Positions 2 to 62,303 of a stretch of DNA of 64,000 bases are shown piece after piece. Within the stretch, counting starts at the first letter, position 1; each line of letters begins with the position of its first letter. The notes below the pieces were generated by a model. It was not told where the DNA came from, made no database searches, and worked only from the letters and a program-made list of their open reading frames with translations. The translations under genes were made by a program, and so were the position numbers. Source of the stretch: Lepidodermella squamata (taxonomy: Eukaryota; Animalia; Gastrotricha); the NCBI GenBank assembly GCA_047495785.1, contig JBLDXI010000023.1, positions 496,001-560,000 on the forward strand, given 5' to 3'.

Positions 2-2567
2 CTTCTGCTCGAGAACGGCGCCAATGTTGAGGAGACGAACGAACCAGCTAGAGATTACGAGTTCACAATGCAGCGAACCCCACTGCTATGGGCGGCATAC
101 CAAGGCCAGCTGGATATTGTCCGGCTTATGCTTCAAAAGTACGGCGCCAAATTGGACGCTGCCGATCGGGACGGCTATTCAGTTCTCAGCACACTTTTCC
201 AACTCAAAATTCAGCCGCAGAACTACTGGTCCTACGTCGCACTCACCAGCTACTTGCCTGGGGAATTGCTGAATTGGAGAAGCGCAAGGGGTCAAAACGC
301 TTTACACTTCGCCAGCCTTGTAAGCCCTACAGACCCGATGCCTTTCGTTCGAATTCTAGTTGAAAAGCATAAATTCGACGTCAATGCGAGAGATAACAAT
401 GGTTATACTCCTCTACTGATGGCGGCTAGAGTTGGCCGATCACTAGACCTGCTTCGTTACCTCATCGAAAAAGGAGCCGACCCGAAGGCGGCGACTGACG
501 CCGGTGAAAACTTGCTATTGAGTACTTGCCAAATCAGCAACAGACGCGAGGCTTTAAACTTCATCAAATTCGCTATTGAAGTCAGTGGCAACGACGTTAA
601 TTCTGAGATTGATGGGAAACGGTGTGACAGCCTGTTTCGCTACTCCGCCGGGTTTGACGCTGAGCACAACCGGTTTTGGATTCAACTCATTAAATACTTG
701 GTTAGTCAAGGATTCGATCTTAACCCGAGCAATGTGAATACCCCGCTGATGGTCGCAGCTGCGGCTGAAAGATCCTTGCCGTATTTGGAGACTCTGATTG
801 ACATGGGCGCCGATGTTAACGCGACGAATTACGAGGGCAAAACTGCGCTGGATTTGACGAGGCCGTCGCGTGATCAGGTTAACATTGGAGCTCTTGTAAG
901 GCGAAAGGCTGCTTGGAGCCGAAATTTCACACGCGTTGCTACTTTTTCGACGCCTAATCGACGGACAACTACTCGGCCAATGACTACAACAGACTCTGGC
1001 AGAAAGTCGATTGATGCTAAGATTGATTTCATGGCGGATGATGCGATTGAACTTGTTCCGGTCGAAATGGGTGGTCCGAAGCTTAAGATCAGGCCGCTGG
1101 ATCGCCGAAGCAACCTGACAACGAAGGTTGACATCAGTCCTGGTGATTATCAGCTCACCCAGGCCCAAGCTGAACTGGATGCGGTTAGTTTTATCTCATA
1201 GATATCTAGTTGAACAAAATGAATTAGCCGTGGGACAGTACGCGTTGATTTCACTCTTCTCTTTACAGAAATTTATCAAGTTCGTGACGGATGGCAACAT
1301 GGAAGGTATTCGTGATATGATAGAGCAGCAGAAGGCCCGAGGCAATGCCCTGCTCTTCAAGCTTCAACAATCCCCCATGTCACGCAAAGCAAATTACATC
1401 ACCATCCCAGCTGTGGCTGCTGCTCTCAGCTCTCAGTTAAAAGGAAACGACACTTTCTACATGGTCGCGGCGCTTCTTCAAAATGGCGGCGATGCTAACG
1501 CTGTTCATCCTGAAACTGGCTTAAGTGCTATAATGATGGCTGCTGCAAACGGCAGTTTCGAATTGGTTGACCTTCTGCTGGAATATAACGCAGATATCGA
1601 TATGGAAACTTTCTCGAAAAGGCCGCGGACTGCTCTCCTCGAAGCTGCTGCAGCCAATCAACTCGAAATGGTCGACTATCTTTTGTCAAAGGGAGCTATC
1701 GCCTACAAGGATGAGCTGATTTTCGCATTCGACGCAGGAAATAAAGTTCCGGTTTTGCCGTTGGTCAAATACGCTGTTGAGAACGTATCCAATTCAGTAA
1801 ATGGCACGGGCAAGGATGGCTATACCCCGTTTGTCAAAGCCGCTTTGCAATTGCGAAATAGTCCAGATCGCCTTGAAATTCTGACGTATTTGCTAGAAAA
1901 TGGAGCCGATGCTGACTCCAGGGTGTCCACAGATCGATTCTCAAACAAAACCTTACTTCACCTTTCCATTTTGGAGAAGGATTACAATTTGACGCAGTTC
2001 TTGACCGAAACTGCCAAGGCTGATGTCGAGGCCCGTGATGGCGATAATTTGACTCCGTTATTACTCGCAGCGAAGAATGGCGATGCTAAAAGCGTTGAAA
2101 TTCTGTTCAGCGCAAACGCAGATCGAAGTGCTGTTGATGACGATGGTAACACGCCTTTCCTTCTGCAATGTGCCAGCGCATATTCCCCGGATCAGCTAAC
2201 GGTTCGTTTCCTCAGGTTCGAAGATACGGATGCAAGTTCTCGGAACAACAACAACGAAACTTGTCTGGCGCTCCTGAAAGGCTGGCGAACAGATTTGAAC
2301 AGTTTGCCGGGCGTTTTGGTAAATCGAGGCTATGATATTAACAAAACGTTGCGCAGAGGCGACACTGCTCTTAATCTGTACATCATTAACGGCGGCAGTT
2401 CAGCGATTGCGGCTTTTCGAGATGCTGGGGCTGATTTGACGTTGAAAAATGATGACGGTCTGACTGCCTTGGATTTGGCTCAGATGTACGGCAACACAAA
2501 AGCTGTCGCCGAATTGAAGAAGCCAAGAGCTCGGCCTACGACGCGCGCACCAGCAAAAACCCGCTGA
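2..2567 (+). CDS. Ankyrin-repeat protein A1 (subfamily I), 5'-partial; exons <2-1183 and 1269-2567
   Basis: Frame is open from base 2 (LLLENGANVEE...). Many ANK motifs (TPLLWAA, GQNALHFA, TPLLMAA). Thr-rich linker. Phase-0 intron GCG|gttagt...tttacag|AAA at 1184-1268, the same position as in all paralogs. Confidence 0.9.
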
Positions 2568-3487
2568 GAAATTAGCGAATCAAGAATCAAACTCTATCAT
2601 CCTCACAAATGCTTGAATATTTCTAAAAAAACTCAATTACTCGCGCCATCTTAGTGACCTTTAAATACATATTTGTTTTGACAAATTAACACACCAGCTA
2701 AATATCACCATAATTTATCTACCGAAATTTTATCTGAAATTCACCGAAATTCAGATCGGTATCTGAAATTCATACTTTCAGTAGATGAATAACTGCGTTT
2801 TTTTAGATTAATTAGGGTGATTTTGAGCATGATTTCCATAGAGGCGCCGAAATTGCGCAAAATAAAATCTAACAATAGAGCAGCCTGCAGGAATAGGTCT
2901 TACAGGCTGAATTTTTTTATTCGAAGATGGTTTGGTAAATGAGGACAGTGGGCGAAAAATGAGCCGGTTCTGCTGCAAGAATGACGAGTTTAGATTTTCA
3001 GAATTTTCTTGAGACGCAATGTCGGCGCCACAATGTCAGATAAATTGTGAGAATGAATGAGGATACTCACAGGGCCTTAGTTGAATTCCCAAGCTAAAAG
3101 TCCATTTTTTTATCACCCAAATTCGGTTTATTTATTTTCGGGTACAGAGAATTACCCTTCTGCTGTTTTTATTAACTAGCACAAACCAATAAAAATAATG
3201 GAAAAATCCCATTGAAATACCGAGCTGGAAAAGCCGGATTTTTTTTCTGAACGCCGGTAGCTGAGCAACAATTTCGTTTTATTTTATCTCTGCTCTAAAT
3301 TTTTTGCGTGAAACAGGATATTCAGAAGCGAGCAAAGCTTTAGGCCGCTTTTCGAAGATTTTTATCGATCCCATCTTGCAGAATGATCCCTGAAAAAATG
3401 ATGGCTTTACCCTATTTCACTAGCCTGGCCTATATCAAAAAGCCTAACTAGGCTGTGAACTGAGCTATATGGTTCATATTTTACTGA

Positions 3488-3667
3488 AATATTAAGGGTG
3501 GCTGAGTGACCGCCGCAAGAAACTGGGTGAGTGTAGCAGAAAGCTGGGTGAACGTCGCAATATCCAGTGTTTTGTACCATGATTGCATGTAAACTTTGCT
3601 ACATTCACTCAACATTTGCGACGCTCACTCAGCTTTTTGCAGCGCTCACCATTTAACTCAAATATTA
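3488..3667. repeat. Degenerate palindrome with ~20-bp subrepeats (MITE-like relic)
   Basis: Left units ctgggtgagtgtagcagaaa / ctgggtgaacgtcgcaa are mirrored by ttgcgacgctcactcagc / ttgctacattcactca. No clear TSD. Confidence 0.4.
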
Positions 3668-3879
3668 ACAATCACTGCAATCACTGCGCTCGGTGTGTCG
3701 AAATTGGGAAATTATAGTCACAAGCTGGACCTCTGTAAGAAAAATTATGCGAAAAGCAAAAAAATTCCTATAAATATCATAGCGCACAACAATAACGCAT
3801 AACATAAATTATCTCGCGCCTTTGCCATTTATTTTGTCTCCTATTTCCATCCGCATGCGCCGGGAAAGTAAATGAGAAG

Positions 3880-4466
3880 CTACGATGAGAGAAAATAAAC
3901 AAGCGAACCAAGCAAAGCCAGTTTTATGTCAGTAATAGCCAAGGATTTATAAGAGGCTGAGGAATCAAGCGGCAGAACCGTGACTGGCCTTAGATCGGAT
4001 CGAAACATGCTGAAAACGCTGGCTGTGTTAAGATCTCGGCCAGCTTGTTCATTCGATGATTCATCACGGCAATTTTCTGAACTTTCAACCGAGTTGCACA
4101 AATCCTCACAGCAATAACAGTGTGGGGCTAAGCCGATGTCCTCGTCCTCCATCAGAAGTTTAGATCCGCAGTTGAAGCTTTGCGTTGGTTCTCGAATGCA
4201 GTCATACAGAATCTTTGAAGAAAGATCTTTACTTTTATTGCCAGCTACAGTCTGAAAGTCCAAGATCTCAAAATGGCATGAAACAAATGGGAAAATGTTA
4301 CCAAACATAAGGCACAATCATTTTCGATTTCGATGGGTGATTCGTAGTTAGTTAGGCCTAATTTCGTCTCTAGATTCGAGTAAATAACACCTGTGTAGCA
4401 TTGAAGCCCTGTCGCAACGCCAAAAAGTAGGAAAAACACTAAAAAATGAGGTCTGGTAGAATGCAT
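3880..4466 (-). CDS. Ly6/three-finger-like, probably GPI-anchored protein, 178 aa; exons 4466-4302 and 4251-3880
   Basis: Signal peptide MHSTRPHFLVFFLLFGVATG is followed by LQCYTG...CALC...CYCCEDLCN. A 50-nt phase-0 intron (gtaac...ctttcag) joins the two ORFs. Hydrophobic C-terminus LALLGSLVYFLSS. Confidence 0.85.
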
Positions 4467-4958
4467 TAGGCCAAAAATGTGTACTGACTGCTACATATTA
4501 GGGCGGTAGGAGAGGAAGAGCTGTTATCGCATTTATTCGCGTTTTTACATGCGTGTCAGTACAAATAATCATACGGCTCATTTGTAAGCCCTGGAGCATT
4601 TGTAAACAACAAATTGCATAGTTATTTTCTCGGCAGCTCATTCGCTCAGATTTATTTACGTGCGCGCTAAGGACGACGCATTTACACGTGATAAATAGAT
4701 GATGATCAAATCGAACATGTAGCGAACAGGAATAAACAAGAGCTTATTTAGATCTTCATAATCAATTTTTCGACGGTCTTGGCCGTCCAGAATTTAGGAC
4801 GAATTCAGTAATGGCGAGACGAAAAAGTCTGTTGATTTTACAAAGGTTTGCTTTCTTGGTCATATGCCCCGTTGTACTCTAAGAGTATGGGTTGTTTGAT
4901 GAAATCCAGGTGCAAATAATCCAGCGCCAATACAATCGCCAATATTGTGCTCTTCAAC

Positions 4959-5947
4959 CATAGATATAGTTCAGTAGAGATCGCCCACTCGCGTGAAAAA
5001 GGGTGTACGCCATGGGCGCCAGATGGTTAGCTGATTCATCAGAGGCTTGGAGGCCAAGTAAACAAAATATTCGATTCGTTTTTTGTCGGTTCCGATCGAA
5101 ATTTAAAAATTTCTCAATTTTTGTTGATGGTTCCAGATAGGTGACATTACAAGGAACGTGCTGGTTATTTTTTCATGATTTTTAACTAAATATGGACCAC
5201 CAAAATCAAAGAAAAATGATTTTGCGATTGGAAATAAAATGAATTAACACCAGTAGCGGAATCGAAATTGAAGCAGTTTTTTAGTGGTCCGTGTAGCACA
5301 GATCGAGCTCTACAATTTGATACTTGGAGCGGACTTGGATGAATTTTTATCGATTTTCTGCAATTTTTTAAAGGAATCGAGAACATAATTTACATTACTA
5401 TCCTTTTGTGATTAAGGTTTGGACTCTTTCCAACCACAACATGTGCATGCGGCGCACGTGCTGTCAACAAAGGTTCTGAATTGAATCCTCCACCAAGTCC
5501 AGATTTTTATTATGGATGAATCCACGTTCGATTTTCGAAAATGTCCAGAAAATCGATAAAAATTCATCCAAGTCCGCTCCAAGTATCAAATTGTAGAGCT
5601 CGATCTGTGCTACACGGACCACTAAAAAACTGCTTCAATTTCGATTCCGCTACTGGTGTTAATTCATTTTATTTCCAATCGCAAAATCATTTTTCTTTGA
5701 TTTTGGTGGTCCATATTTAGTTAAAAATCATGAAAAAATAACCAGCACGTTCCTTGTAATGTCACCTATCTGGAACCATCAACAAAAATTGAGAAATTTT
5801 TAAATTTCGATCGGAACCGACAAAAAACGAATCGAATATTTTGTTTACTTGGCCTCCAAGCCTCTGATGAATCAGCTAACCATCTGGCGCCCATGGCGTA
5901 CACCCTTTTTCACGCGAGTGGGCGATCTCTACTGAATTATGTCTATG
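4959..5947. mobile_element. Foldback-type non-autonomous DNA transposon with ~402-bp TIRs and 8-bp TSD
   Basis: Arms 4959-5360 and 5546-5947 are near-perfect reverse complements (CATAGATATAG.../...TTATGTCTATG). TSD TCTTCAAC at 4951-4958 and 5948-5955. Confidence 0.92.
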
Positions 5948-6302
5948 TCTTCAACCGATCGAGTCTGTCGTTTGAATCTATCGCCTGATCCACAGTTGTT
6001 ACAGCACTGTCAGTGGAACAGTGCTCGAAATGAGATAACACCTTGGGGCACACTGTAACCGTGACCCTCAATCTCTTCAGCGTTATTAAGCCATTTGGCG
6101 GCAATAGCAACAAAGAGCAAATGCACCACGGTCGCGGATTGATCCTGGCACAGACAATAACAATACTGTAACAGAAGAAAATATCTTTCCATAGTGAATT
6201 TATTCGAGCTGAATATATGAAAGAGTGCGGCACGAGACCGCTTTTTTATGCCACCCAACATCCGCCAATTATAATGTTTATTAATTTCACAAATTAAATA
6301 AC

Positions 6303-7165
6303 GACTGTAAGAAACGATTAAACTCAGGGTCCACACTGATCCGATGCGAATGGGCAAGGGCTATGGCAGCGTTTCCCAAACCGTGTCCTATAGGAAACTC
6401 GTGTACTAAGCCAACTTTCAAGTGTCCTGTAGGATACTGGTGTCCTATGGGCCTCAAAATGATAGAACACAAAAATTGGTAGATCCACACTAAGAAACAA
6501 GACATTTTGGACCATTTTCAGACTCAAAATCTGGAAAAACCGTCAGCTAAAGCTCGCTTCAGTCGCGAGTTGCCTATTTATGAGATATTTTATGAAATAT
6601 TCTCCGATCAGACGGGAACCCTTACTTTCATGGTTTGGCTGAATCTCTGAGCTCTGAGACGATAAATGATAGAATCAATTTTTGAACTGACCCATGTCCA
6701 TTGTTATTTAAGCACTTTACATATTGCACCTTACGACATGATTAGTTTAAAATTCATAAAATTGATGAGTGAATTTCTGGGAAAACCCCAAGGCATGGCC
6801 TCAATTTTAAGATATTATAAGTCGTTTTTTAGTGTCGAATTCTACAAATTTTCTCGCTTCGCTCGCGTTTAGTTTGAATTTTATCCGGGATTTTATCAAT
6901 TTCGAGCTCGGTTGCCATCAAAAACCAAGCGATCAAATTTTTTCCCATTCCGAACCAAATTTCATTCATTTTAGCGAGGTGTCCTGCGAGCCATTCTCAT
7001 AGGACACTACTGTGTCCTACCAGACAAAAAGTTTGGGAACCACTGGGCTATGGCATGAGAAATTTCGTAGAAAACAGAGATTAGAGTAGCGTTCGACTAG
7101 GATGATTTGCGCAGTAGGATTCTAAAATATTGCCAAAATTATTGACCGATTAGCAACAGCAATTT
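6303..7165 (+). pseudogene. Relic of intron 2 of the Cys-rich gene family (third, decayed copy), interrupted by a hAT element
   Basis: act|gtaagaaacgattaaactcagggtcc...ctgatccgatgcga...gcaaggg and atggcatgagaaattt...gaccgattagcaacagcaa match 15831-15887 and 16054-16152. Confidence 0.7.
6367..7045. mobile_element. Non-autonomous hAT (Buster-like) element, 679 bp
   Basis: TIR CAGCGTTTCCCAAAC / GTTTGGGAACCACTG. 8-bp TSD GGCTATGG at 6359-6366 and 7046-7053. Subterminal gtgtcct repeats. Confidence 0.9.
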
Positions 7166-7544
7166 GCTTTCTTGGTCGCGTGACCAGTTTTTCACTTGTC
7201 AAGAACTTTATAACAAGCACGGCCAAATCAACGCAACTGAAAAGTGATTCCGGGTGGCTACTTCACCTCAATTTATCTCAAAAGACCCCATCTTCGATTT
7301 TTTCGAATTTTGGTTGCCGAGAAGCCTCCATCATGGGCTATGTAGGGACCCAATCCGAATTTCCGGCTGTCTATGCGTTGATTTTCTGGAATCTTTCAAA
7401 TCTTCCGAATTTTAGCAATCAATAAAATGGCGCGGGGCTGCTTGCGAGTTTTTTTTCGTGGTATGAATCGTGCTATTACATTGCAGATAAAGTCGTGGTT
7501 CATCAGCCGATTGCAAATGGCGAATGGGTTGTGACTGTTTATGG

Positions 7545-7700
7545 CAGGGCGCGAAGTACGGGGGGGAATGAGGGGTATCGTACCCCCAGTTCGGCAGGCC
7601 AAAGTGGATAAACCCCCAAAAAACCTCAGGGGGGACCCTTTGGTCATGAAATTGGGGCCCGAAAATACCCCCTAGCTCGAGGATCCTACTTCGCGCACTG
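7545..7700. mobile_element. hAT-type MITE, 156 bp (family with several copies in this window)
   Basis: TIR CAGGGCGCGAAGTA / TACTTCGCGCACTG. 8-bp TSD GTTTATGG at 7537-7544 and 7701-7708. Confidence 0.9.
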
Positions 7701-7718
7701 GTTTATGGTCAAAATAAG

Positions 7719-7940
7719 CTCGACATCAATTAGCTCTCCTGTGATTTCGACGACATACAAGGAAACAACTTCCAACTTCATACAATTCGAATTCTGACGC
7801 CTAGCGACGAGGGAATCAACGATCGCCTGCAGCCGATTGTTGGAGCTATTTTCAGGGCAAGATCAGCTATGGAGTATCTACGACCACGCGATCGAACGTG
7901 AAATCTGAATTGTGGCCAATGGAATCGGCAGACTATGACC
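7719..7940 (+). pseudogene. Fragment of the ankyrin-gene linker (LTPSDE..LQPIVGAIF..SELWPMES)
   Basis: Aligns by eye with ~21630-21852 of A2, with indels. Confidence 0.8.
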
Positions 7941-9555
7941 AGAAAATGACTAGAAAGCCTGAGTTGCCGCGCAATTGTGAATAATATGTATCATTCGGAT
8001 CATAGTGGAATAAACGCAGTAAAACAGCCCGGCATATTGCCTGCTATCCCGGGCTGATTTAAACCCCGTCATGGCTCAAAATTTTGGCAGCACTTACTCC
8101 TATCTTCGATTTCTTTGAGCACGGAAACAAAAGACACGAAAATACTGAGGCGCCGAAACCCCCGCGACCACCTAAATTTTATTATTCTGTAAAATTAACG
8201 AGAAAATTAACAAAATTGAAGAATTTGCCGAAAAGACACGGGGACTAGCGGGCCAAGCCATTTTTGCCGTTAGATCAGCTGAAAAAATCCAGCGGAGGCG
8301 ATCATCATTGATAGAGACTTGAGCCAGCAGCAACTTGCGCCCAAACTTGCTCAAGAGCGGGCTCAGATCAATTCGAGAAACGGTGTTGTTCCAAAAGCGG
8401 ATGCTACAGCAAACAAGTCGCAAGCCGAGACCATTTCGTTGCCTTCGCTGGGTGACTGGCTGGTTGCCTGGAAATTCTTCATTCGTATTAGCAACCTGGC
8501 TTCTAGGCTTGACCAGCCAATTCGCAATTCGAGAGATAGGCTTGACGTTTTGCCCAAAATTGATGCCACCCATGTTGATGCGGACGGGCTTGAAAAAAAG
8601 AATTTTCAAATCGCAGCGAAAAAACGAAGAATGATGAGCGTTGAAAATGCGCAATTTTAAGTTGGATTATCTATTTCGATATTTTCGGCAATTTCTAGTA
8701 AATGATCGCCTGCTGCAAACCAAGCTCGAGCCTGAGGATGATCTTCTTATTCTCCTAGCTCGAAATTCCGGTTTGAAAGTCGAAAGCTGACCGAGCCATT
8801 CAATTAATATATTTCGCGGGCTCGAGTGATCACGTCGATATCGTCACCAACTTGCACCAGTCGAATTTCGTCCGTGCAGGCCAATAGATTCCGAAATTAA
8901 GTACTTTTAATGAAGGGATACGAAATAAATTTAATACGAAATAAAGGGATGAGACTCGCGATTTTCCCAGTAAAAAATTGATGCTTGCGTAAAAAAGCTC
9001 TTATAAATTGTACGACGTCAGTTTTTCTCGCGATTTTTGAGCCGCTTTACGATGATAATTCTCGGACGGTTTCTGACTTCCAGAAGCATTTTAATGGAGA
9101 GATGCAAGCTGTGACGAGTTCATAGTATTATAGTCCCAAGGTTTATCATGAGAAGAGATGTCACGGCAGGTGTTTGACGCAAATGTTGTGTGTGTACTAG
9201 CAGAGCTAGCTCGGATTATCTTTTCACCGTATCTAAAGTAATTTACTACCCTGTTTTTTACGCGCTCCTCGTTGTAGCTATACTCCACTATACACATCAA
9301 ATGCGTAAATTAGGCGAAGCCGATGCTGATTTTTGTGTTCACTGGCTGGTTGCGTGTGGCTTTCTGCCTTTTTGTGTAGTCATTAAATCTTAACTGCAAT
9401 GGCTGTAGAAAATAAAATTCACACAGTTGATGCTGCTCGTGTGTGCTCGACGCGGCGGGTCGCTGGGCCGCTTCCATTTTATAATTTTTGGCCAATTTCT
9501 CTGTCACACGAATGCGACCGGTTCACCACGTCAAGTTCACCACGAGAAAGATGGA

Positions 9556-9562
9556 TATATAA
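9556..9562 (+). promoter_or_regulatory. Candidate TATA box of Cys-rich gene 1
   Basis: TATATAA inside the block ggatatataagagctgaagcggcgg, which is conserved before the paralog (TATTTAA at 15237-15243), about 60 nt upstream of the ATG. Confidence 0.45.
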
Positions 9563-9623
9563 GAGCTGAAGCGGCGGTTGTTATATATCCACTTTCCATT
9601 TCTCCAAGATGATTGAACCAAGC

Positions 9624-12338
9624 ATGCAATCATTCGTCCTAGCTCTCGTAGCCGCTACGTGTAGCGCAGTCACAGCTTGCCCTGCAACATCGACAACGCC
9701 CTGTCCAAGATCGGCCACAGCAACCGATTCTCCTGGAACTTGCCCGAATGGCCAGGCCTGTTACACCACATCAAACCCGTGCAACTCTGGCTCGTCCTGT
9801 GTGGCCTCGGCTAACGTTTGCGATACAACAGCCAACAACTGCGTCGCCAAAAGCGGCGCTTCTTCGTGTGCCAGCGGCCAAACTTGCACGCCGTCTGGCA
9901 ACATCTGCGACGCTACTGCAAAAAATTGCATCGCAAAGACGGATTCGCAGTGCCCAGCAGACCAGGCTTGCATGAGCCCAGTAAGTCAATTTCAGCCGGA
10001 TGATATATTTTTACTCGTATGTGAATTCATGTGACAGGTAACCTACAAGCTGTGTCTGATAACTAAAACGCAGGGCGCTGCGTCTGTCGCTAAAATTAAT
10101 GTTCCATTTTGCACGGCGAATGGTGGCGCGTGCAACTCGGTTTTGACAACTGGAACAACTGTAAGAAAATTTCTCAAATTTCTCCTGGTGCGAAGGACAG
10201 TGGTGCTGGGGTGTCGCCGACACCCCTGCTCCGGGTATGCAACCAGAGGATGGGTGGAAAACCACAAAGGGGACCCTTTGGTTTCTTAGGCTGGGTCATT
10301 TCGTCGTGCGTGCGGACAATAGTCCTATCTCCACGAGAGTTTATTTTGAGATAGATCGAAAAGTGTATCTCAATTTTAAGTAAAAAACTTCGCCGAGTCC
10401 ATTTAGACCATTTTGCATCGTTATCGCGCAATTGGGACATGCTTTGAATGTGGGACGTTTTCGTGCCACTTTCTTGTTTTTGTTTAATGGTTTTCGTTAG
10501 ATCGCGGTTCGATTCCTCATGCACTCATCAATTGTTGAGCTATTTTATTTTTGAGCGTAAACAAAGAGGATCATTTTTCCTTTGGCATCGAAATCGCGCT
10601 GCTGTGGTTTGATTCCTCGTGCATGCATATACTTTTTTAGCGATTTTACATCAGCATTTTGCTCGCGATTGAGTCATTTGTGGCTGGAGATAAGATTTTT
10701 GATGCAATTGGCTGCATCCATTAAATGGACTTACGGGGCTACCGCAGGGTAAGGGGCTATTCGGTGAGATTGTGGCTTAGTAAAAAACTATGAGGTCAAA
10801 GTCGATAAAATTTTGTTTGAAGCTACCTGGATAGATGACGCTTATTCCATGATGGCATACTCAGAATTTACAAATAATACATCTAATCGGCTAGGGGACG
10901 TAAGTTCGTGGACTTCAAACAGCGTAAAAAAACCAGGTTGAAAAGTTAATTCTTGAAAGTTGTCATTTGTACCACAAATGCTGTTAACTGACCTATATTG
11001 GCCAGCGTTTTCAAGAACATTTTAACGATTTTGGATGACTTTCAGATGTAAAAAGTAAAAATTTCACAAACATTTTGATGTCTCATCTGTCAGATTTACT
11101 GGTGATGACTTATAGCATTAGCTGATCCGCTGATAAAAAAAACTTGAGATTATGAAGTAAAACAATGTAAAAATTGCCAACTTTTCTATTCGGCACTATT
11201 TTTCGCCGCAAAGAAGCGCAAAAGAAAGAGCGCATCGACTCAGTTAGATGGGCATGTTCAGAACAAATATAAATTGCTCATTTGACCTGAAATTCAGCCA
11301 GAAAAAGAAGAAAACCCCGGCTTATTTCGGACAGCCACAAACTGCAGACAATTCAATCGACCTTGACGTTTTTTAAACTTCAATATTTTTGCGAGGATAG
11401 CACTGAGCTGCGACTTTTGATCCGTAGCGAATTTTGAGTTTTGAGATGCTATTTTCAGATTATTGACCAGCATGAAAAACTGAGTTAGAAACTTTAAAAA
11501 TCTCACTTTCGATTTTGGATGCTCAGCATATGACTAATCGCCGCACGCACGACAAGTAGAAAACACCTCAGTTACCGGATCCTACTTTGCACACTGATCA
11601 CGAGTCATTTTCCCTTGACTTGTCCGGGGCTTTTGGCACGAGAATTTTTGCAGAAGACAGGGCAAAGATTCTTCGTAGCGTTGGACTATATGCAAATTGC
11701 ACAACATTTTGCTGTTAAATAGCTAGAAGAAGCTAGAAGATTGAACTATTTTCTATAGGCCACCGCCCTGATATCTTCGAGATTTTCTATGCCAACAATC
11801 TTGGGAATTCAATGTGGCCCCAAAAATGAAACAATTTGAATGTGAAATAAGTAGGTTATGCGTTTACTCTTTTCAGGCAGCTCCTTCCGATCCCAATACG
11901 TTTCCTTCGTTTGCGGCCTGTTGCAATGCAGCGAAAGGAGCTAATTCTGTCATGTACGAAACTGTTCCCGGCTCACCGCCTGTAATGGCGTGCATTCAAA
12001 AAATGGATGGCGACAACCCGTACAAAATAACCTCTGAAACTGCTACTGGAATAATCAGCGGTGCTGCGGCAGCGTTGTGTTTCCGCTTCCCCTACACTTC
12101 ATCAGTCTCAACATACGTTGCTGTCACTTCTGGCGGGGTAGGTTTTTTCTACAAACACTTTTGTTATTTCTGTTCTATTTGTTCTTCTTGATTACAGACC
12201 ACCAGAATAACCGGTAGATACGACGCTGCAAGTTACCAAGAGTGCTGCGGGGTTTTAGCGGGGATCGTTCTCTCTTATGCATCCACAGGAAGTGCTTATG
12301 GCGCAACTGGTTTTGATACGTGCTTGTTCGATGGTTGA
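9624..12338 (+). CDS. Secreted cysteine-rich protein 1, ~293 aa; exons 9624-9980, 10038-10160, 11877-12137, 12198-12338
   Basis: Signal peptide MQSFVLALVAATCSAVTA. All three introns are GT-AG and phase 0, giving a continuous ORF with the same structure as the paralog at 15298. An in-frame ATG at 9609 is an alternative start. Confidence 0.88.
10184..11596. mobile_element. hAT-type MITE split by a nested insertion (halves ~10184-10297 and ~11554-11596)
   Basis: The two halves join to give the reverse complement of the 15888-16053 element. Right end ...ggatcctactttgcacactg. Confidence 0.7.
10303..11553. mobile_element. ~1.25-kb TIR element nested in the MITE
   Basis: Termini GTCGTGCGTGCGGacaatagtc / gactaatcgCCGCACGCACGAC. 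No clean TSD and no transposase ORF. Confidence 0.65.
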
Positions 12339-12892
12339 ACAGATGAATATCACGAGGAAGATCAAGACATTGAGAAAACTGTTGACCGCTGACTTCCCAC
12401 GCCGAGGCATCCCCGTTTTCTTTTGGTTGCCATTGCATTTTTGAAAATCAGATGTCCGCCACATTTTGAATAGTTCATAAGTATGCTTTCATTCTTATGC
12501 GACTCCGATAGGGCCACATTTGTTTCTCTTGGTTTATTTTTCATCGATTTCTATATTTTCGAAAATTTCTCACATTTAGTTAATTGTTAAACATTTCTGA
12601 CCATTCGATAATATTAACATCAGCGCTATATAAAATTGTAGAATTAAAATGCTTCACCGATATCTGCATCCTCGCTATCTGCACCCCCGTTATTAGTCAT
12701 CGATATGTGGACCCCGCTAAATAAACTAGCTGTAAATTTTCAATTAAAAAAGAGAATTTATTTGATAAATTAAACAAATTAGGAGGAGTGTGATCAAAAA
12801 AGTTGTATATTTTTTGTATTTTATATCAACGTTATAGCAGCATTTTAATTTTTTGTTTTACGTTGATTGGTAACATTCAGTAATATTAACAA

Positions 12893-17059: not shown

Positions 17060-17302
17060 ATAATTATGAAGAATAATATTACAAGGAAGATAAAGAACTT
17101 GAGCCAACTGGTGATCGGTCTGTCTTTTCACGCACCTTTCTATTGCTGTTGCTTCATTAGAAAATCAGATGCCAGCCACATTTTGACTGGACCATGCGCC
17201 TTCATGTGCCTCCAGTGATTGTGATTAATCAGCTCTAAAATCTTCGCACAAAAAGTATTATTTGGTATCGGTAATGTTCTCGAAGCCAATGTTGTCTGTT
17301 TG

Positions 17303-36400: not shown

Positions 36401-36542
36401 TAAAACTGATGAACACGTTGAGGAAGTCGGTGATGAAGATGGTGCAGATGATGAGTACCACAAGGACAACGCACGTGAGGAGTATACTGCAGCCCTGTCC
36501 AATTTTGTTCGGATTCCTCAATGCAAACTCGAAGGCGCTTGA
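33403..36542 (+). CDS. Secreted two-block ankyrin-repeat protein A4, ~924 aa, intact; exons 33403-33474, 33526-34845, 35160-36542
   Basis: Signal peptide MTSIYLLFFGISFTGA. Phase-0 GT-AG introns and a continuous ORF. About 20 ANK repeats, S/T linker, acidic tail. Confidence 0.92.
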
Positions 36543-48970: not shown

Positions 48971-49655
48971 TTATACTAAAAACATCTCTTTCCAGAGGAA
49001 TTAAACAACAATTCCCTCACAAATACTAAAAATTCTGAAAGAATCGGGTATCCATAAAACTTATATATTTTCGATAGCTTATATCATCCTGGTAAAGAAA
49101 ATATTTGTTTTCCGAACATTTCCGACCATTCTTCAACAATTTGTCCGCCCCGAAATAATCGAAACATTTCTATATTCGTGATTTTGTGACCTACTAAGCA
49201 AAAAAGTACCTTTGCAACCTCAAATTTTGACACTATGACATGAGCATAAGCGTCCGATCTTTCCTTTATCTACGGAAAAACCATATTAGAAACTCATGGA
49301 AAGTCAATATCGATGAAATAACCTAACAAACCTTCTTTACCTACGCTCAGGTGAAATGTTCTTAGAAGTGCTTAAGCTCCGTCTTTCACTTGTCGCGGCT
49401 CATTTGTTTTTCTTTCTTATCTATTGTTGTTTAGTTTATATAGGTAAATACATAGGGAATTCCCGGATGTTGCAGATAAAATTATCAGAATATTTACGAA
49501 TTGTGAGGAGGTCGTCGTACTGTTTTGCAGGATGTTAACAGCCTGCGTTCTTTTTGATAAAGACATTCATACCAATTTTGCAATAATCTGTTAGAGTATT
49601 CTTGAATATTCTCATTAGTTATTATCTAACTTTTGTTTCTTATAGTATAAAAATA

Positions 49656-50405
49656 ATGCCAGAACTGGACAAGTCGATTTCGGCGGGCCTGTCGACGACC
49701 GGTCCGTACGTGTCGCAAAATATATGTTATACAAAGGATTTCAATATTGGACCGCTCCACGTCGGCGCTCAGACTTGTTTGGAGAATGGCCTTCCGAATG
49801 CAGGTCTCTACATTTCGGTAGACTTACCTAAAAATACGAGCTTGGAATTAGGCGCTAGTGCTAAAGGTCTTTATGCCGAAGTCGGAAAAAATATTGGTGA
49901 TTTTAACCTCTTGATTGCTGAAAACTCACATTCATTGGGAAATCCACAAATAAATCAAAAGTTCAATGGATCGTTTGATCAACCATACCAACCATACCAG
50001 GAAGTTAGACCATACCAACCTATAGACCTGCCATCGATACCTGATCCACCGAAAACTCCTTATCAACCATATGTTTTACCTGATCGGCCCTGGAAACCAG
50101 ACCCTCCTTTTGGAAATTCTTCATGGCCTTCTCAATGGCAGGAGTTGAGAGTAAACCCTTCTAGAGAAATTGAAGATCTTGCTCATGCGGACACTCTTCG
50201 CTGTGCCTTTGGTCCATACAAAATGGTTCCGCCGGAAGAAAGTCCCGAAATTAGACTTTCAGTCAAATCACCCAAGTTGGTTCATATGTCGGATTACCTA
50301 ACGCCATCCCCGGCGACACCCATCTTTGATCCAAAGATGGGCGATTTCATTCAGCCTGCCACAATGCCGTCGTCATGGCTGCTGCAACAACAGGTGCGTC
50401 CATAG
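49656..50405 (+). CDS. Intronless orphan ORF, 249 aa: Gly-rich N-terminal half, Pro-rich PYQP repeats
   Basis: 750-nt ORF in AT-rich flanks. aaaataATG start preceded by an acceptor-like ttttgtttcttatag. No family recognised. Confidence 0.6.
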   Translation: MPELDKSISAGLSTTGPYVSQNICYTKDFNIGPLHVGAQTCLENGLPNAGLYISVDLPKNTSLELGASAKGLYAEVGKNIGDFNLLIAENSHSLGNPQINQKFNGSFDQPYQPYQEVRPYQPIDLPSIPDPPKTPYQPYVLPDRPWKPDPPFGNSSWPSQWQELRVNPSREIEDLAHADTLRCAFGPYKMVPPEESPEIRLSVKSPKLVHMSDYLTPSPATPIFDPKMGDFIQPATMPSSWLLQQQVRP

Positions 50406-52196: not shown

Positions 52197-54775
52197 AACT
52201 CCATTTCTCTGGGCTGCGAGATTTGACAGGCTGGAACTTGCAAGACTCCTTGTGGAAAATTGTGGAAAAACTTTTTGGTGCCGCAACAACTGATCCAGTA
52301 CCTATTGCTAAATTGTTGGTTGAGCAGTGGCTGGCTATTCCATACTATTACTCCAGTACCTGATCGAACAAGGAGCCGATCCTCTCAGGCGAGGAATAAC
52401 AATGGCGATAACATGTTGCTTCAAGCCTGTTCAATGGATCAAGTTGAGTTCGGCCACTTAGCCTTCATCAAGTTTGCGATTGAATTAGGGGGGAATGACA
52501 TTAATTCGAGGTCAAAATATGATAGCTGCAACCATCGCCTACAGAATCGGCGTTATTACGAAAATTGGCGGATAGATGATTGGGATCTTGTCGAAATGAT
52601 GCAATACTTGTCTAGTAAAGGCTATGATTTTAACGTTAAGGATGGATATTCGGGCTTCAACGAGTTGATGTCTGCAGCAGCTTTGGTTGATCAAAGGAAT
52701 ACTCTTGAGGCTTTGGCATACTCTGGAGGCGAGGTGCTGCCGTGGCTAAGGAGCTAGTCACCAAAAAATTGACTAGCCACGCAGCTACGACTCCACGAAA
52801 GAGTTCATCAACTATGTTCACGGCATCGACAGCCATCACTGCTACTAAACTTTGGCCGTTGACGCCTAGCGATGAGGCGATCGACGCTGGTCTGCAGCCG
52901 ATTGTTAGATCTATTGTGAAGGCAATTTCTAGTGCGGCTAAGAACTCCACGACTGCACGATCTACCATGAAAGCAGTACGAGCTGAAGGACAAAGTGAGC
53001 TGAACTCAGTAAGTAACCGTTTCTTGATTCTTGTCAGTGAAAATCATACTTCCTTCACTGGTCTCCTCAGTAATGAAATGTCAACTGCCGAGTCAAGTTT
53101 ACCAACAATGCCCTGGAAACAGCATTTGTACCTAATGCTTCCCCATAGCAGCCTGGGCTAGTAAATATCAACCTTAGAATTATAAAACTACAATAATTGA
53201 TTGTTCGTTAATTTATAATTTGAATGTTTTCTAACATGATTCCTCAACCCTTGGCTATGGCGAAGAAGAACTCGCCATAGCCTACGAACATTACTCAGTG
53301 AGCATAAAGCATAATTGTAATCAAAATTGGACGTTTCTAATGTCAAAACAAAACTAGGCTAATTCTATTATCATTTCTATTTTTGGCACAGACTTGTTGG
53401 CTTTCTAAAGACGATGGACGTTAATGACGTTCGCGAAATGATTCGACTCAACCAATCCCGGGGGGACGCTCTTTTAATCGAACACCGGACTTATTACGTT
53501 GATTGCAGGTATGTCAATTACGACCAAGCTATCCCAGCTGTTGCTGCAGCTTTGAGCGTTAAAAATACTTCTCTGGAAATGCTCAAAATTCTACTCGAAA
53601 TCGACGGCGATGTGGATGCAATTCATCCAAATTTCAAGAAATCCGCTCTGATGCTTGCAGCAGGACAAGGTCGTCTGGATCTGATTAAATTACTCGTACA
53701 ATTCGGCGCAGATGTTGATTTGGAAGCGAATGGAAGAACGGCGATACTCGACGCTGCCTCAAAGAATCTTGATATAGTAAAATTTCTCATTTCGCAGGGA
53801 GCTACTAAAAACTTGGATCAAATTATTTTCGAGGCTTGCCGGATTTCCTCAATGCCTGCTCTCCCCATGGTTATATTCGCCACTGAGGAGGCTGTGAATT
53901 CTGTTTCTGACACGGATATGCTAGGCAGACCTCCGCTTGCAGTCGCAGCCATGTACTTGAAATCGCCAGATCGTATTGAGGTCTACGAGTATCTGCTATC
54001 AAAAGAGGCCGATGTTGGAACCAGGATAAATTCAGCTTGGTACAGATACAAAAATTACACATTGTGCATCCAGCAGCGCGATTAAATGACTCGAGAATAG
54101 CGCGATTTCTAATCAAAACAGCTGGCATTGGCCTTGACGACCGTGATTCAACTGGCAAGACTCGTTGATGATTGCAGCTATCAACAACTCGCAAACAACT
54201 GCCAAGCTTCTAGTTGATTCTGGCGCGGATGTAACGGCTATTGATAACGATGGCAATAACGGTTTTTGTTGACTTGCATAAACGACGATGATCTTCTCAT
54301 GCGGGCCAGACGATTTGCAAATTTCTCTGGAGTGGACGTGAATTCACAGAACAACAACAACGACACGTGTATAACTCTGATTCGCGACGACTATCCTTTC
54401 AACGGCTTTGCCAAATTTCTTGTCCGAAAAGGCTATGACATAAACCGGAAACTGCGAAGAGGAGATACTGTTTTGCACATTCTCGCAACTCGCGGGACCA
54501 TGAAGAATGTTCTTGAGTTGATTGCGGCTGGATCTAATGTTTTTGCGCGAAATGACTATGGCTATACCCCACTTGATTTGGCGTTGTTTTTCGACAATTC
54601 GCTAGTTGTGGAGGTCTTAAGAGCTGTCGAAGCTTATGAGCGTGATAAGGAAGTCGGTGACGATGAAGACAATGCAGGCGTTGATAACCGCAAGGACAAT
54701 ACAGACGAGGAGTATACTGCAGCCCGAGACAAGTTAAAACGCCAGCCACCACCCTTTCCATGCAACACTTCGTAG
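52197..54775 (+). pseudogene. Ankyrin pseudogene A7
   Basis: No signal exon, internal deletions, acceptor CAG mutated to CAC at 53387-53389, and frameshifts near 52730, 54066 and 54163. Confidence 0.88.
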
Positions 54776-58761: not shown

Positions 58762-61700
58762 ATGAGATCGATTTATTTACTATTTGTTGGAATATGCTTT
58801 ACGGGCGCGGATTTGCTGGCTGACTACGACAGCGTAAGACCTTCCTTGTAAGAATCGTAATAAGGCTGCAACTGTTGCTTTGACAGGCTTTTAACCGAGC
58901 TATAATATCGGGTCAATTTTCAACCGTTCGGCAAATGTTGGATTCCGGCCTTGTCGACTCGAATTCATGGTTGTGGTACGGCTATCAAAACGGAGCGCCT
59001 GCTATCATGAATGCAGTTCGGAACAATCAAAGTTACGAAATGGTTGAATTATTACTGAAAAACGGGGCTAATGTTGAGGGTAGGACGATGCGTGGTAGCT
59101 ACGATGACAAAACTCCCCTGCTCTGGGCTACAAGAGTTGGCAGGCTGGATCTAGCCAGACTCCTTGTGGAAAAGTACAGAGCAAGGACTGATGTTACAAC
59201 CAGAAACAATGAGACAGCATTGATGGTTGCCTTTGATGGGACAATCGACCCAAGTTATCTTCGACTTGCTTACTACCTGTTACCATTTGAATCGCCTAAT
59301 TCCAGAAACTCCGCGGGGCAAACTGCCCTGCACAAACTTTGCGGTGCCGCAACAACTAATCCACTGTCTTTCGCTAAATTGCTGGTGGAGGAGTTCAGAA
59401 TGGATGTGAATGCTAGAGATTACAGTGGCAACACGCCTCTGCTAATCGCGGCAAAAGCTGGTTATTCGATCGATCTACTTCAGTACTTGATTGACCAAGG
59501 AGCAGACCCACAGTCGAGAAATAACGGCGGCGATGATATCTTACTTCGAGCTTGTCAAATAGGCCAAACTGAGTTGGGCCACTTAGCTTTTATCAAATTT
59601 GCTATTGAAGTAGGCAGCAGTGATTTGACTTCGAGTTTGAGATTAGCTGCCTGCTTTAATCGTCTTCAGAATCGGGGTGATAACCAGCTCGATGACTGGG
59701 ATCTGGTCGAAATTTTGCAATACTTAGCTAGCAAAGGATTCGATTCCAACGTCAAAGATGGACATTCGGACGACACGGCTCTGCTCGCAGCAGTTTTAAA
59801 TGGTCAAATACATACTCTTGTGGCCCTGCTCGACCTTGGTGCTGATGTGAATGCGACGGATGACAGGGGCAGAACTGGTTTGGACATTGCGACAGCGCGT
59901 AGAAACAAAACTATCATTGGGAATTTGAAAAGGCGAGGTGCCGCGTTTGGCAAGGAACTGGCCAGCGGATCAGCTAGGTCATCGACTAGTCGATCCACTC
60001 CAACTTCGAGTTCATCTACATTTTCGGCGACATCGACAGCTATTACTGCCACCAAAAAGTGGCCAATGACGCCTAGCGATGATGCGATCGAAGCTGCTTT
60101 GCAGCCGATTGCCGGAGCTATACTGAAGGCAAGATCAACTGTGGCTATAGCGTCTACGACTACAAGACTGCTGAACATGTCGGGACAGGGCAGTGACGGC
60201 CAAGTGAGGAAGCTTTCAGCTAATAAATGTTTAAAAATCGCTCAGGAAATTCAAGAAATGCTAACTAGTTAAGTATTTGCCGTTAATGAGCTGTGGCGAC
60301 GTTTGTTGTAGTTAGAAAAGGTGCTTTCAGCAGGTATAAGGTGGGCTAATTCAGTTTCGTTAACTCAAATTAGTTTCAAGGTGCAATAAGCTGATAGCGT
60401 CTCGGATTTGAGCTTGTTTACAAAAGTATCAAGGTGAAAACTGACACAGTAAGATGTTATTTCTCCGCTTATACTTGCCCCCAGTCTCCTTGAAACTGGT
60501 GTAAAGATTAGATTAAATCTGAGATATTCAATGACGCTAAGGATATCTTCGACAGCTGAAAATATCTTATAGCAGATGAAAGCATCAACAATAAATGTAT
60601 GTTTTGCAGCTCTTTACGACAACAAAATCTACCATAAAGAAAGCAGTACGAAGCGAACCGCAGAATGCTCTCTATTCTGTAAGTTGACTTTTCTTGTAAC
60701 TCATTCCGAGGTCTTTAACGAGCTTGTACAGCTGTCCTAGAGTCTAGATTCTAGAGAAGCCTAAAATCAAGGGTTGCAAATTTCCTTCGCGACGTATTTA
60801 CCTGTAACCTTATTTCTTTGTATTTCTCGGCAGAGATTTATAAGCTACATAAAGACTGGGAGCGTTCCTGCTGTTCGCGAAATGATTCGGCTCAATCAAT
60901 CCCGAGGAGACGCGCTTTTAATTGAACACCGCAGTGAAAAAGTAAATTGTGATTATATTGAATACGACCAAGCTTTGCCAGCGGTAGCTGCTGCGTTAAG
61001 CGTGGACAATTCTTCGTCGGAAATGCTCCAACTCCTACTCGAAAACGACGGCGATGTGGATGCAATTCATCCAAATTTCAAGAAATCCGCTCTGATGCTT
61101 GCAGCAGGACAAGGTCGTCTAGATCTGGTTAAACTACTCGTACAATACGGCGCAGATGTTGATTTGGAAGCGAATGGAAGAACGGCGATACTCGACGCTG
61201 CCTCAAAGAATCTTGAAATCGTGAAATTCCTCATTTCGCAAGGAGCTACAAAAAACTTGAATCAAATCATTTTCGAGGCTTGCCGGATTTCCTCAATGCC
61301 TGCTCTCCCCATGGTTAAATTCGCCATTGAGGAGGCTGGGAATTCTGTTTCTGACATTGATATACTGGGTAGAACTCCGCTGGCAGTCGCTGCAATGTAC
61401 CTGAAATCGCCAGATCGATTTCAGGTCTATGAATATCTTCTATCGAAAGGGGCCGATATTAAAACCAGGATGGATTCGATTTGGTACAGATACCGAAACT
61501 ATACATTGCTACATCTGGCAGCTCGTGCAAATGACTTTGAATTGGCATCTATCCTAATCAAAACAGCTGGCATTGGCCTTGACGACCGCGAATCAACTGG
61601 CAAGACTCCGTTGATGATTGCAGCTATCAACAAATCACAAAAGATTGTCAAACTACTCGTTGATTCGGGCGCGGATGTTACGGCGGTTGATGAAGATGGA

Positions 61701-62303
61701 AATAACGCATTTTTGCAGGCATGTAAATACGACGACAAGCCTCTCCTGCGAGCCAGGCGATTCGCTAACTTCACAGGAGTGGACGTGAATTCTCAGAACA
61801 AGCACAACGACACGTGTCTAACCCTAATCAAGGACGAATATCCTTTCAATGGATTTGCCAAGCTTCTGGTCCGAAAAGGCTACGACGTCAATCGTAAACT
61901 GGTAAGAGGCGATACTGTTTTGCACGTCATCGCAACCCGTGGGACCGCAAACAATATTGGAGAGCTGATTGCAGCTGGATCTAATGTCATTGCGCGCAAT
62001 GATGATGGCCAGTCCCCGCTTGATCTGGCTTTGCTATTCGGGAACACCCAAGTTTTAGACATTTTAAGAGCAGTCGAAGCTGTTGTAGCTAAACCGAGAA
62101 GAATAGCGCTTAGCGCTACACTGAAAATGACTACAACAACCGATGTTGAACACGATGACGCAAATGAAGTGGAAGATGAGGAAGTCGGCGATGAAAACGA
62201 TGGAGGCGATGAATTCCACAAGGACAATGCAGACGAGGAGTATAATGCAGCCCGGCACAATTTTGAACGGCTCCCTCCATGCAAATTATTTAACACCGCT
62301 TAA
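58762..62303 (+). CDS. Secreted two-block ankyrin-repeat protein A8, ~975 aa, intact; exons 58762-58833, 58887-60203, 60610-60678, 60834-62303
   Basis: Signal peptide MRSIYLLFVGICFTGA and phase-0 introns. The extra 69-nt exon encodes KAVRSEPQNALYS, which ends exon 2 in A4. Confidence 0.88.

Follow-up and report, generated by a model that had tools for sequence, protein, structure and literature searches.

A lineage-restricted, tandemly duplicated family of predicted secreted two-armed ankyrin-repeat proteins in Lepidodermella squamata

Ankyrin (ANK) repeats are known from textbooks as a protein-binding scaffold of the cell interior, and to our knowledge their use outside the cell has so far been mainly engineered, as in DARPins, or rare, as in latrotoxins and a few predicted effectors. 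The 64-kb stretch of DNA analysed here (the window) holds eight ANK gene copies, A1 to A8, all on the forward strand as mapped by tblastn, and six of them (A2, A3, A4, A5, A6 and A8) have their 5' end inside it. The question that this locus raises is, are these ANK proteins made for the outside of the cell and, if so, what would they do there? The best explanation, which we regard as probable, is a lineage-restricted family of secreted two-solenoid ANK proteins acting as bivalent extracellular scaffolds or cross-linkers.

Two copies give clean spliced models without a stop, A4 (924 aa) and A5 (935 aa), and both follow the same order: a leader, a first array of about 10 ANK repeats, a Ser/Thr-rich linker, a second array of about 12 and an acidic Tyr-rich tail. 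In A4 the 72-nt leader exon (33403-33474; MTSIYLLFFGISFTGAALLADYDS; GTGAGA donor) is followed by exon 2 (33526-34845), encoding the first repeats, the Ser/Thr linker and a conserved helical motif, and by exon 3 (35160-36542), encoding the remaining repeats and an acidic tail with Tyr and Cys. A5 consists of a 66-nt leader exon (38477-38542; MRSIYLLFFGICFAGAAVEYDS), exon 2 with arm 1 and linker (38593-39948) and exon 3 with arm 2 and tail (40084-41469), the latter two placed by tblastn. A8 begins with a 72-nt leader exon (58762-58833; MRSIYLLFVGICFTGADLLADYDS); its exon 2, with arm 1 and linker (58887-60203), has a donor at 60204 or alternatively at 60141, both in phase 0, and between this exon and the open exon 3 with arm 2 and tail (60834-62303; tblastn) lies an additional mini-exon coding for the linker end (60610-60678; LFTTTKSTIKKAVRSEPQNALYS). 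A8 thus has one extra intron compared with other copies, as does A3. The first copy, A1, has its 5' end and leader outside the window; its exon 2, with arm 1 and a Thr-rich linker (2-1183; tblastn), is an open frame followed after 1183 by a GTTAGT donor, and its exon 3 (1269-2567) encodes an arm 2 that is intact to the stop codon and matches Ank_2 with E=3.7e-34.

The other four of the eight copies (A2, A3, A6 and A7) are broken. The A2 leader exon (20403-20465; 63 nt; MRSIYLLFFGICLTAAVNNDS; GTAAAA donor) precedes an exon 2 with arm 1 and linker (20517-21858; tblastn) whose frame is shifted by a 2-nt deletion near 20650, so that the copy is apparently broken; its exon 3, with arm 2 and acidic tail (22136-23548; tblastn), is open. 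A3 has a 66-nt leader exon (28506-28571; MRSIFVLTICLIAAAAEIHFNN), an exon 2a with the ANK cap and hairpin (28622-28756), the extra intron of about 0.9 kb, an exon 2b with the remainder of arm 1 and a poly-Thr linker (29691-30929; tblastn) and an exon 3 with arm 2 (31265-32505; tblastn), where a 1-nt frameshift near 31912 has apparently broken this copy too. In A6, a 72-nt leader exon (43407-43478; MRSIYLLLLGVCFTGADFYVNYNS) is followed by an exon 2 (43531-45676; tblastn) split by an 831-bp MITE-like element (44540-45370, no strand assigned), and by an open exon 3 with arm 2 and a long acidic tail (46254-47726; tblastn). The element has inverted, sub-repeated termini and at least 8 full-length copies elsewhere in the genome at 91-99% identity. 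A7 is truncated at its 5' side, the leader and the 5' half of exon 2 being missing from the remnant (52386-53008; tblastn), and its exon 3 (53392-54775; tblastn) is a pseudogene with 8 in-frame stops. Inverted fragments of an arm-1 exon on the reverse strand (18786-19491; tblastn pieces, 43-66% identity) constitute a further pseudogene remnant, and none of 10 intergenic ORFs matched in a Pfam search. Identity to A4 separates A1 and A3 (subfamily I, 38-45%) from the other copies (60-76%), the same division into A1/A3 and A2/A4-A8 that the original prediction had drawn.

That prediction had also proposed a dedicated signal-peptide exon of 63-72 nt, and a mini-exon of this kind, hydrophobic and starting with ATG, is found in all six copies with a 5' end in the window. 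The N-termini read M[RT]SI[YF]..., the donors are in phase 0 (GTAAGA, GTGAGA or GTAAAA), and intron 1, of only 45-51 nt, carries a CAAC-type branch motif and a YAG acceptor, right after which exon 2 opens with GCNTTYAA (A-F-N...). Between the copies, conservation extends to exon 1 and its splice signals but neither to the sequence upstream nor to the interior of the intron. When both strands (128 kb) were scanned for any exon combining an ATG, 18-34 open codons, a core of hydrophobic residues and GTRAG or GTAAA in frame, seven candidates came up in total, six of them the ANK leaders. The only public sequencing run that contains the locus is of DNA, its genomic contigs covering introns and intergenic DNA and containing no exon-exon junctions, and joining of exon 1 to exon 2 is therefore predicted from the splice signals.

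The arrangement holds across the family, which numbers at least 50 loci in this 121-Mb animal genome. An intronless HSP70 gene of the assembly agrees with an animal origin, being about 75% identical to those of molluscs, barnacles, tardigrades and flatworms and 83% identical to a metagenomic contig; the assembly contains no mitochondrial COX1. A motif combining leader end and donor has 33 matches in the genome compared with 6 for a control pattern, and in 27-28 of the 33 cases an arm-1 start follows 45-65 nt further on. Other genomic clusters, with half of each neighbouring one covered, yielded 10 more leaders (among them MISIYVILFEICF, MRPILFLCTVSVAF, MHFNLLIFLGISS and MKSIFLLLLHIYF); their sequences have diverged but hydrophobicity is kept, as expected for signal peptides. 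Leader and splice signals are retained in about 31 of about 37 complete family genes, across a dS of about 1.

Are these leaders signal peptides? Judged by heuristics of hydropathy, charge and small residues, the window leaders have an uncharged core of 13-20 residues, a Kyte-Doolittle 8-mer maximum of 2.5-3.2, Arg at position 2 in five of six cases and small residues (G-A-A, A-R-A) ahead of the acidic flank DYDS. By the same heuristics they agree with the n-h-c layout of Sec-type signals, that is, a basic n-region, a hydrophobic core of 7-15 residues and small residues at -3/-1. Arg2 before the core and the acidic DYDS after it would, by the positive-inside rule, place the ANK part in the lumen. 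Against this, several leaders of other clusters have Glu or Asp within the hydrophobic core, some leaders outside the window have no basic N-terminal residue, and half of the copies in the window are broken. The predicted absence of a transmembrane segment and of a catalytic domain is confirmed: apart from the leader, no segment of the A4/A5-type models exceeds a 19-residue Kyte-Doolittle value of 1.6, and Pfam detects no domain other than ANK in the family proteins of the window. The protein models contain no ER-retention signal and no GPI-type tail, the C-termini being acidic or polar. Taken together, these sequences are best read as coding for proteins that enter the secretory pathway, and we consider this likely.

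An alternative to secretion is that the ANK arms are cytosolic, either because the leader serves as an uncleaved organelle anchor or because the leader exon goes unused and translation starts in exon 2. In its favour, the great majority of ANK repeats are found inside cells, N-x-S/T sequons do not occur significantly more often than composition predicts (z = 0.3-0.5, whole proteins), no disulfide pattern is evident, and in the A4 leader 20 residues in a row are uncharged; the lack of an N-terminal basic residue in some leaders elsewhere also fits this alternative. The proteins have 8 cysteines in buried positions of the helices, as is usual for cytosolic ANK repeats, with no sign of pairing; given that conserved cysteines at such positions are common in cytosolic ANK proteins, they are uninformative on disulfides. 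Against an anchor, most cores span 13-16 residues, too short for a stable span, and the charge asymmetry favours translocation of the C-terminal side. Retention of the leader in most complete genes argues against an unused exon, and extracellular stalks typically contain mucin-like Ser/Thr and poly-Thr spacers such as these. A cytosolic location is thus unlikely.

The layout of the putative mature protein is as originally described, about 10 ANK repeats, a Ser/Thr linker and, on a separate exon, a second array, for which about 12 repeats are counted here; both repeat numbers derive from 20 partial repeat-HMM matches and alignment. Four arm ORFs match Pfam Ank_2 (PF12796) with E = 4e-29 to 2e-46, which assigns them to the Ank-repeat superfamily (including Ank, PF00023). 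AF2 models fold the A4 arms into solenoids (pLDDT 78 for arm 1 and 84.5 for arm 2) that Foldseek matches to ANK structures with a probability of 1.00, and each solenoid begins with a pair of capping helices and a beta-hairpin finger. The linker between the arms has 85-95 residues, a Ser+Thr content of 32-35%, a single conserved helical motif and a pLDDT below 50, as in disordered Pro/Thr/Ser-rich spacers of the mucin type; poly-Thr runs occur in the linkers of subfamily I and at C-termini in other clusters. The C-terminal tail is acidic and Tyr-rich with a single Cys.

We propose the following scheme of secretion. Each intact gene would give rise to a protein of about 925 aa destined for the secretory pathway, its private mini-exon supplying a cleavable N-terminal signal peptide, and the mature protein would start around (I)DYDS-AFN. 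It would comprise two homologous ankyrin solenoids separated by a Ser/Thr-rich spacer that is probably O-glycosylated. Lacking a membrane span, a GPI-type tail and an ER-retention signal, the product should end up extracellular, either released or as a deposit, and serve there as a bivalent scaffold or cross-linker that binds proteins. Conservation of arm 2 among paralogues suggests a common partner, and the greater variability of arm 1 at the canonical ANK recognition positions suggests that its partners differ.

How does this architecture compare with known ANK proteins? In fold, the closest known proteins are the membrane-binding domains of ankyrin-R and ankyrin-B and other long ANK solenoids: the arm-1 model superposes on the Espin-1 AR (TMq 0.63) and on ankyrin-1/AnkB (TMq 0.54-0.57), and each arm is likewise a long uninterrupted solenoid, of 10-12 repeats. 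In sequence, ankyrin-1 and ankyrin-2 are the best PDB matches (164 bits), at an identity of only 20-29%. The cytoskeletal ankyrins stay in the cytosol, possess no signal peptide and contain further domains (spectrin-binding, death or others), whereas the family described here combines a leader exon with two solenoids and the mucin-like spacer between them, and has no additional parts. Multi-DARPin fusions are among the top Foldseek and phmmer matches; DARPins, however, are built of 4-6 artificial consensus repeats, while the repeats of this natural family are degenerate.

Among animal proteins, the latrotoxins of widow-spider venom (PDB 7ptx, 7pty, 9go9) resemble the family in having about 20 ANK repeats and acting outside the producing cell, export being a prediction here. 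Their ANK repeats, about 20-22 in number, form one continuous array behind a large N-terminal helical or wing domain, whereas in the gastrotrich proteins the ANK cap follows directly after the leader and the array is split by the linker. Similarity to alpha-latrocrustotoxin (130 bits) is confined to the ANK repeats and ranks below that to ankyrin-1/2. Latrotoxins are not known to have a classical signal peptide. The original prediction rightly noted that their large non-ANK N-terminal domain is absent here; to take latrotoxins as the sole exported precedent would be too narrow, as other secreted ANK sets have been published. They comprise predicted secreted ANK effector candidates of phylloxera (PMC7376646), ANK-bearing proteins of spittlebug foam (PMC12911473) and secreted ANK proteins of oomycetes (PMC11139960). 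These sets, themselves mostly predictions, share with ours a signal peptide and ANK repeats in expanded, lineage-specific gene sets; no sequence relationship was found (nothing above 41% identity among 1.84 billion representatives), and the combination of two arms, mucin linker and acidic tail is not described in the accessible parts of the three papers.

In protein searches, arm 2 retrieved only generic ANK matches of at most 34% identity from 5.8 billion proteins, arm 1 only giant multi-repeat ANK proteins of at most 41% identity from the 1.84 billion representatives, and a 133-aa N-terminal piece, chosen to pick up fragments of spliced transcripts, had no match in a protein search. None of these three large searches turned up a close relative. 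The gene family is best explained as lineage-restricted and tandemly duplicated.

Paralogues in the family show birth-and-death turnover and are under purifying selection, with a dN/dS of 0.2-0.3 at a dS of 0.2-1.0. At the recognition positions, dN/dS is 0.17-0.72 in arm 1 and 0.14-0.42 in arm 2, never above 1, as estimated by pairwise counting in 12 pairs only. Recognition positions of arm 1 evolve 2-6 times faster than the framework; those of arm 2 have the framework value. Entropy is highest at ANK positions 2, 3, 13, 14 and 33, that is, variability peaks at the positions randomised in DARPins, yet no positive selection was found there. A2 and A5 form a mosaic, with a dS of 0.22 in arm 1 and 0.76 in arm 2, which suggests exchange between copies.

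Could the products be weapons, secreted effectors or toxins that act in or on the cells of prey, a host or a competitor, with arms engaging targets of the intracellular type? Such a mode of action has been proposed for ANK effectors of insects, and latrotoxins act in this way at membranes. The usual targets of ANK repeats are cytosolic, the cysteines resemble those of cytosolic ANK proteins, and the family is large, tandem and lineage-restricted with birth-and-death turnover; moreover, predicted secreted ANK proteins are among the commonest domain classes in the effector set of phylloxera (PMC7376646). On the other hand, there is no uptake, pore-forming or catalytic module, a recognition-position dN/dS below 1 is weak for an arms race, and latrotoxin is no nearer in sequence than ankyrin-1. 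We regard an effector role as quite unlikely. Very unlikely is a hypervariable recognition repertoire under diversifying selection, along the lines of the DARPin-like binders for immunity or host interaction in the original prediction: the large tandem family, its predicted export, the entropy peaks, the faster arm-1 recognition positions and the A2/A5 mosaic would suit it, but raised entropy at such positions is common to any ANK family, arm 2 evolves there as its framework does, the paralogues are old (dS 0.7-1.0) and 60-76% identical and thus not hypervariable, and dN/dS values that never exceed 1, together with sequons that are not enriched, leave it unsupported.

If the products are exported as extracellular scaffolds or cross-linkers, this would be a large, conserved, animal-encoded, ANK-only family routed through the secretory pathway, and would show that the ANK fold functions under oxidising and glycosylating conditions. 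The family would also be a source of natural ANK binders with two arms, of which the partners and the tissue or secretion could be identified. A bolder view, that the ankyrin solenoid, in other settings almost exclusively an intracellular module, has been recruited as a major class of extracellular binder, with at least 50 secreted bivalent proteins serving self/non-self recognition, adhesion or matrix cross-linking, is conceivable but doubtful. The locus also illustrates how short signal-peptide exons missed by ORF-based annotation can alter where an entire gene family is predicted to reside. As a separate observation on the gene content of this genome, it holds more than 1700 Sushi candidates.

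All six copies with a 5' end among the eight tandem ankyrin (ANK) genes of the window (A2, A3, A4, A5, A6 and A8, in a 5' to 3' numbering from A1 to A8) are preceded by a short ATG-initiated frame, the leader. These frames start at 20403, 28506, 33403, 38477, 43407 and 58762, respectively, open with M[RT]SI[YF] and continue into a hydrophobic run, measure 63-72 nt and end in phase 0 exactly at GTAAGA, GTGAGA or GTAAAA. The following intron, 45-51 nt long, carries a CAAC-type branch motif and ends in a YAG acceptor rich in pyrimidines, and exon 2 opens GCNTTYAA (A-F-N). Alignment of the six 5' regions reveals conservation of leader, donor, branch region, acceptor and exon 2; the upstream DNA and the intron interior are not conserved. 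As a chance control, a scan of the window's two strands (128 kb) asked for an ATG with 18-34 open codons, an N-terminal hydrophobic 8-mer of Kyte-Doolittle hydrophobicity (KD) >=2.5 and GTAAG, GTGAG or GTAAA in frame. Of just seven sites that pass, six are the ANK leaders; thus, the dedicated leader exon claimed by the original prediction for all 5'-complete copies is real, far beyond chance. A TGAATTTTAGCA-like motif about 60 nt upstream of the leader ATG (e.g. 33340-33360) is common to A2, A4, A5, A6 and A8, in upstream DNA that is otherwise unconserved, and is a candidate core promoter element for these genes.

The family recurs across the assembly (121 Mb in 151 contigs). Arm 1, the exon 2 solenoid, has at least 52 genomic matches at E <1e-20, and arm 2, the exon 3 solenoid, at least 51 at E <1e-30, both counts being lower bounds. 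Clusters occupy C23, the contig of the window (400-640 kb and 960-1040 kb), and C54 (48-140 kb), and single loci are found on C24, C48, C30, C13, C34 and C150. In sampled 10-kb pieces of these other loci, a leader exon is present at 10 of 11 complete arm-1 starts, the eleventh (locus L002) retaining the leader's 3' part alone. The leaders of other clusters have diverged (MISIYVILFEICF..., MRPILFLCTVSVAF..., MHFNLLIFLGISS..., MKSIFLLLLHIYF...) yet are still hydrophobic, and the leader end is usually (I)DYDS. With at most one mismatch, the leader-end-plus-donor motif GAYTAYGAYARCGTRAGA has 33 genomic matches versus 6 for a control pattern, and 27-28 of the 33 precede an arm-1 start by 45-65 nt. 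Including leaders with more mismatches recognised by eye, the leader is kept in about 31 of about 37 complete genes. On C150 (10898-20188) two divergent copies, 51-58% identical to A4 with identical scores, lie head to head. The contig is small and the inverted duplication perfect; the arrangement may be an artefact of the assembly.

Behind the leader, arm 1 opens with a pair of ANK capping helices and a short beta-hairpin, and exon 2 encodes about 10 repeats altogether. A spacer of 85-95 residues, 32-35% Ser+Thr, separates the arms; its conserved motif LTPSDEAINDGLQPIVGAIFKARST... forms a helix pair in the AlphaFold2 model and the rest is disordered. Exon 3 encodes the second solenoid, with the same cap-plus-hairpin opening and about 12 repeats, and ends in a 44-aa tail of net charge -6 to -10 that carries DEEY-type tyrosines and one Cys 4-9 residues before the end. 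At loci L013, L014, L019 and L006 (C23:995-1025 kb, C54:105-115 kb and C23:480-490 kb) the C-termini are instead AKPMPFYL followed by poly-Thr, and these genes may continue into a further exon. Outside the leader, no 19-residue window of the models reaches KD 1.6, and beyond ANK families the Pfam search gave a single match, below threshold, to LRRK2 ANK repeats. The predicted two-armed protein with a Ser/Thr linker and no transmembrane segment or catalytic domain therefore stands, with about 10 repeats in arm 1 and about 12 in arm 2. The arms are homologous (26-27% identity, E ~1e-12), so that the gene looks like an internal duplication with a phase-0 intron at the seam. Structures predicted for the arms (pLDDT 78 and 84.5) match the generic long ANK solenoids of Espin-1 AR, ankyrin-1 and AnkB. 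Two subfamilies do exist, as proposed: subfamily I (A1 and A3 in the window, loci L011 and L016 elsewhere) has poly-Thr linkers and is 38-45% identical to subfamily II, which holds the remaining window copies.

Is the leader a signal peptide? We consider entry of the family proteins into the secretory pathway probable, though well short of certain. The uncharged leader cores span 13-20 residues with KD 8-mer maxima of 2.5-3.2, and most are too short to span a membrane stably. Arg occupies position 2 in five of the six window leaders, and small residues (G-A-A, A-R-A) and then an acidic flank stand at the leader end. By the positive-inside rule, the charge asymmetry of a leader sets which side crosses the membrane, and the C-terminal ANK side would thus go across. 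Sequence divergence with kept hydrophobicity is typical of signal peptides, as mucin-like Ser/Thr spacers and poly-Thr C-termini are of extracellular proteins, and all three features seen here count in favour. Against this reading count eight cysteines at helix positions common in cytosolic ANK proteins, the Glu or Asp inside the core of some leaders of other clusters, and N-glycosylation sequons that are not significantly more frequent than composition predicts (z 0.3-0.5); these sequons occur at about 1 per 100 aa, roughly double the median for 270 generic ANK proteins. A search designed for spliced transcript fragments gave no match; the one sequencing run found to cover the locus is not RNA but consists of genomic contigs, introns included.

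The proteins appear restricted to this lineage: no close relative was found among 5.8 billion proteins (best <=34% identity) or among 1.84 billion cluster representatives (<=41%, giant generic ANK proteins only). Latrotoxins matched as generic ANK only, scoring below ankyrin-1/2, and their defining large N-terminal domain is absent from the family, as predicted. A full-text literature search on secreted or extracellular ankyrin returned bacterial effectors, an oomycete family and latrotoxin. Taking latrotoxins as the sole exported precedent would be too narrow: broader searches bring up phylloxera candidates for secreted ANK effectors, identified by prediction (PMC7376646), and spittlebug foam proteins that contain ANK repeats (PMC12911473). 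On these accounts, the combination of a signal peptide with ANK repeats is already precedented in animals; the literature text searched does not describe a two-arm, ANK-only family of this kind that is large and conserved.

ANK repeat frames on the + strand make up nearly all large ORFs of the window, and a tblastn search using the best copy's two coding blocks resolves the eight copies and an inverted arm-1 fragment (18786-19491). A4 (924 aa; 33403-33474, 33526-34845, 35160-36542), and A5 (935 aa; 38477-38542, 38593-39948, 40084-41469) give clean three-exon models. A8 has an open reading frame with an additional linker mini-exon at 60610-60678, and A1 runs off the window at its 5' end. Four copies appear to be broken. 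In A2 a 2-nt deletion lies near 20650; A3, its arm 1 interrupted by an additional intron of ~0.9 kb, has a 1-nt frameshift near 31912. These small indels could be assembly errors. A7 lacks its 5' half and its arm-2 exon has eight in-frame stops. Exon 2 of A6 contains an 831-bp MITE-like element (44540-45370), a non-autonomous transposon with inverted sub-repeats of about 32 nt as termini; given at least eight full-length copies on other contigs at 91-99% identity, the insertion is young. A 16-kb gap in the array (2600-18700) holds ORFs without a Pfam match, and a 267-aa Pro/Gln-rich ORF at 49602-50405 (+) likewise has none.

Pairwise Nei-Gojobori dN/dS values of 0.19-0.32 at dS 0.2-1.0 indicate that the intact copies are functional and most duplications old. 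A2 (20517-23548) and A5 (38593-41469) form a mosaic, with a young arm 1 (dS 0.22) and an old arm 2 (dS 0.76), which suggests exchange between array copies by gene conversion or unequal crossing-over. When alignment columns are assigned to repeat positions by a repeat HMM, entropy peaks at ANK positions 2, 3, 13, 14(-18) and 33, a pattern that any ANK family shows. For the six canonical recognition positions, arm 1 gives dN/dS of 0.17-0.72, versus 0.11-0.18 for the framework, and arm 2 gives 0.14-0.42, the same as its framework. The contrast agrees with arm 2 having a conserved partner and arm 1 more varied ones. The values never exceed 1 in either arm and do not fit an arms-race repertoire; in this respect the original prediction of an expanded set of binders for immunity or host interaction is not borne out. 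An exported bivalent scaffold or cross-linker would be the best mechanistic reading of the family protein.

Downstream of the array, a 244-aa ORF at 63068-63802 (-) has two Cys-rich modules, each ending CCxxxCN (ECICCESNCNS, RCTCCGDSCNT), a hydrophobic C-terminal tail and no Pfam match; it resembles a GPI-anchored protein of Ly6/uPAR type with two domains. An intronless HSP70 gene assigns the assembly to the animals, its matches including no closely related named species. Across the assembly there is a very large Sushi/CCP expansion, with 1734 first-look candidates, of which 150 pass the Pfam cut-off; they form dense arrays on C15, C19, C33, C13, C3 and C24.
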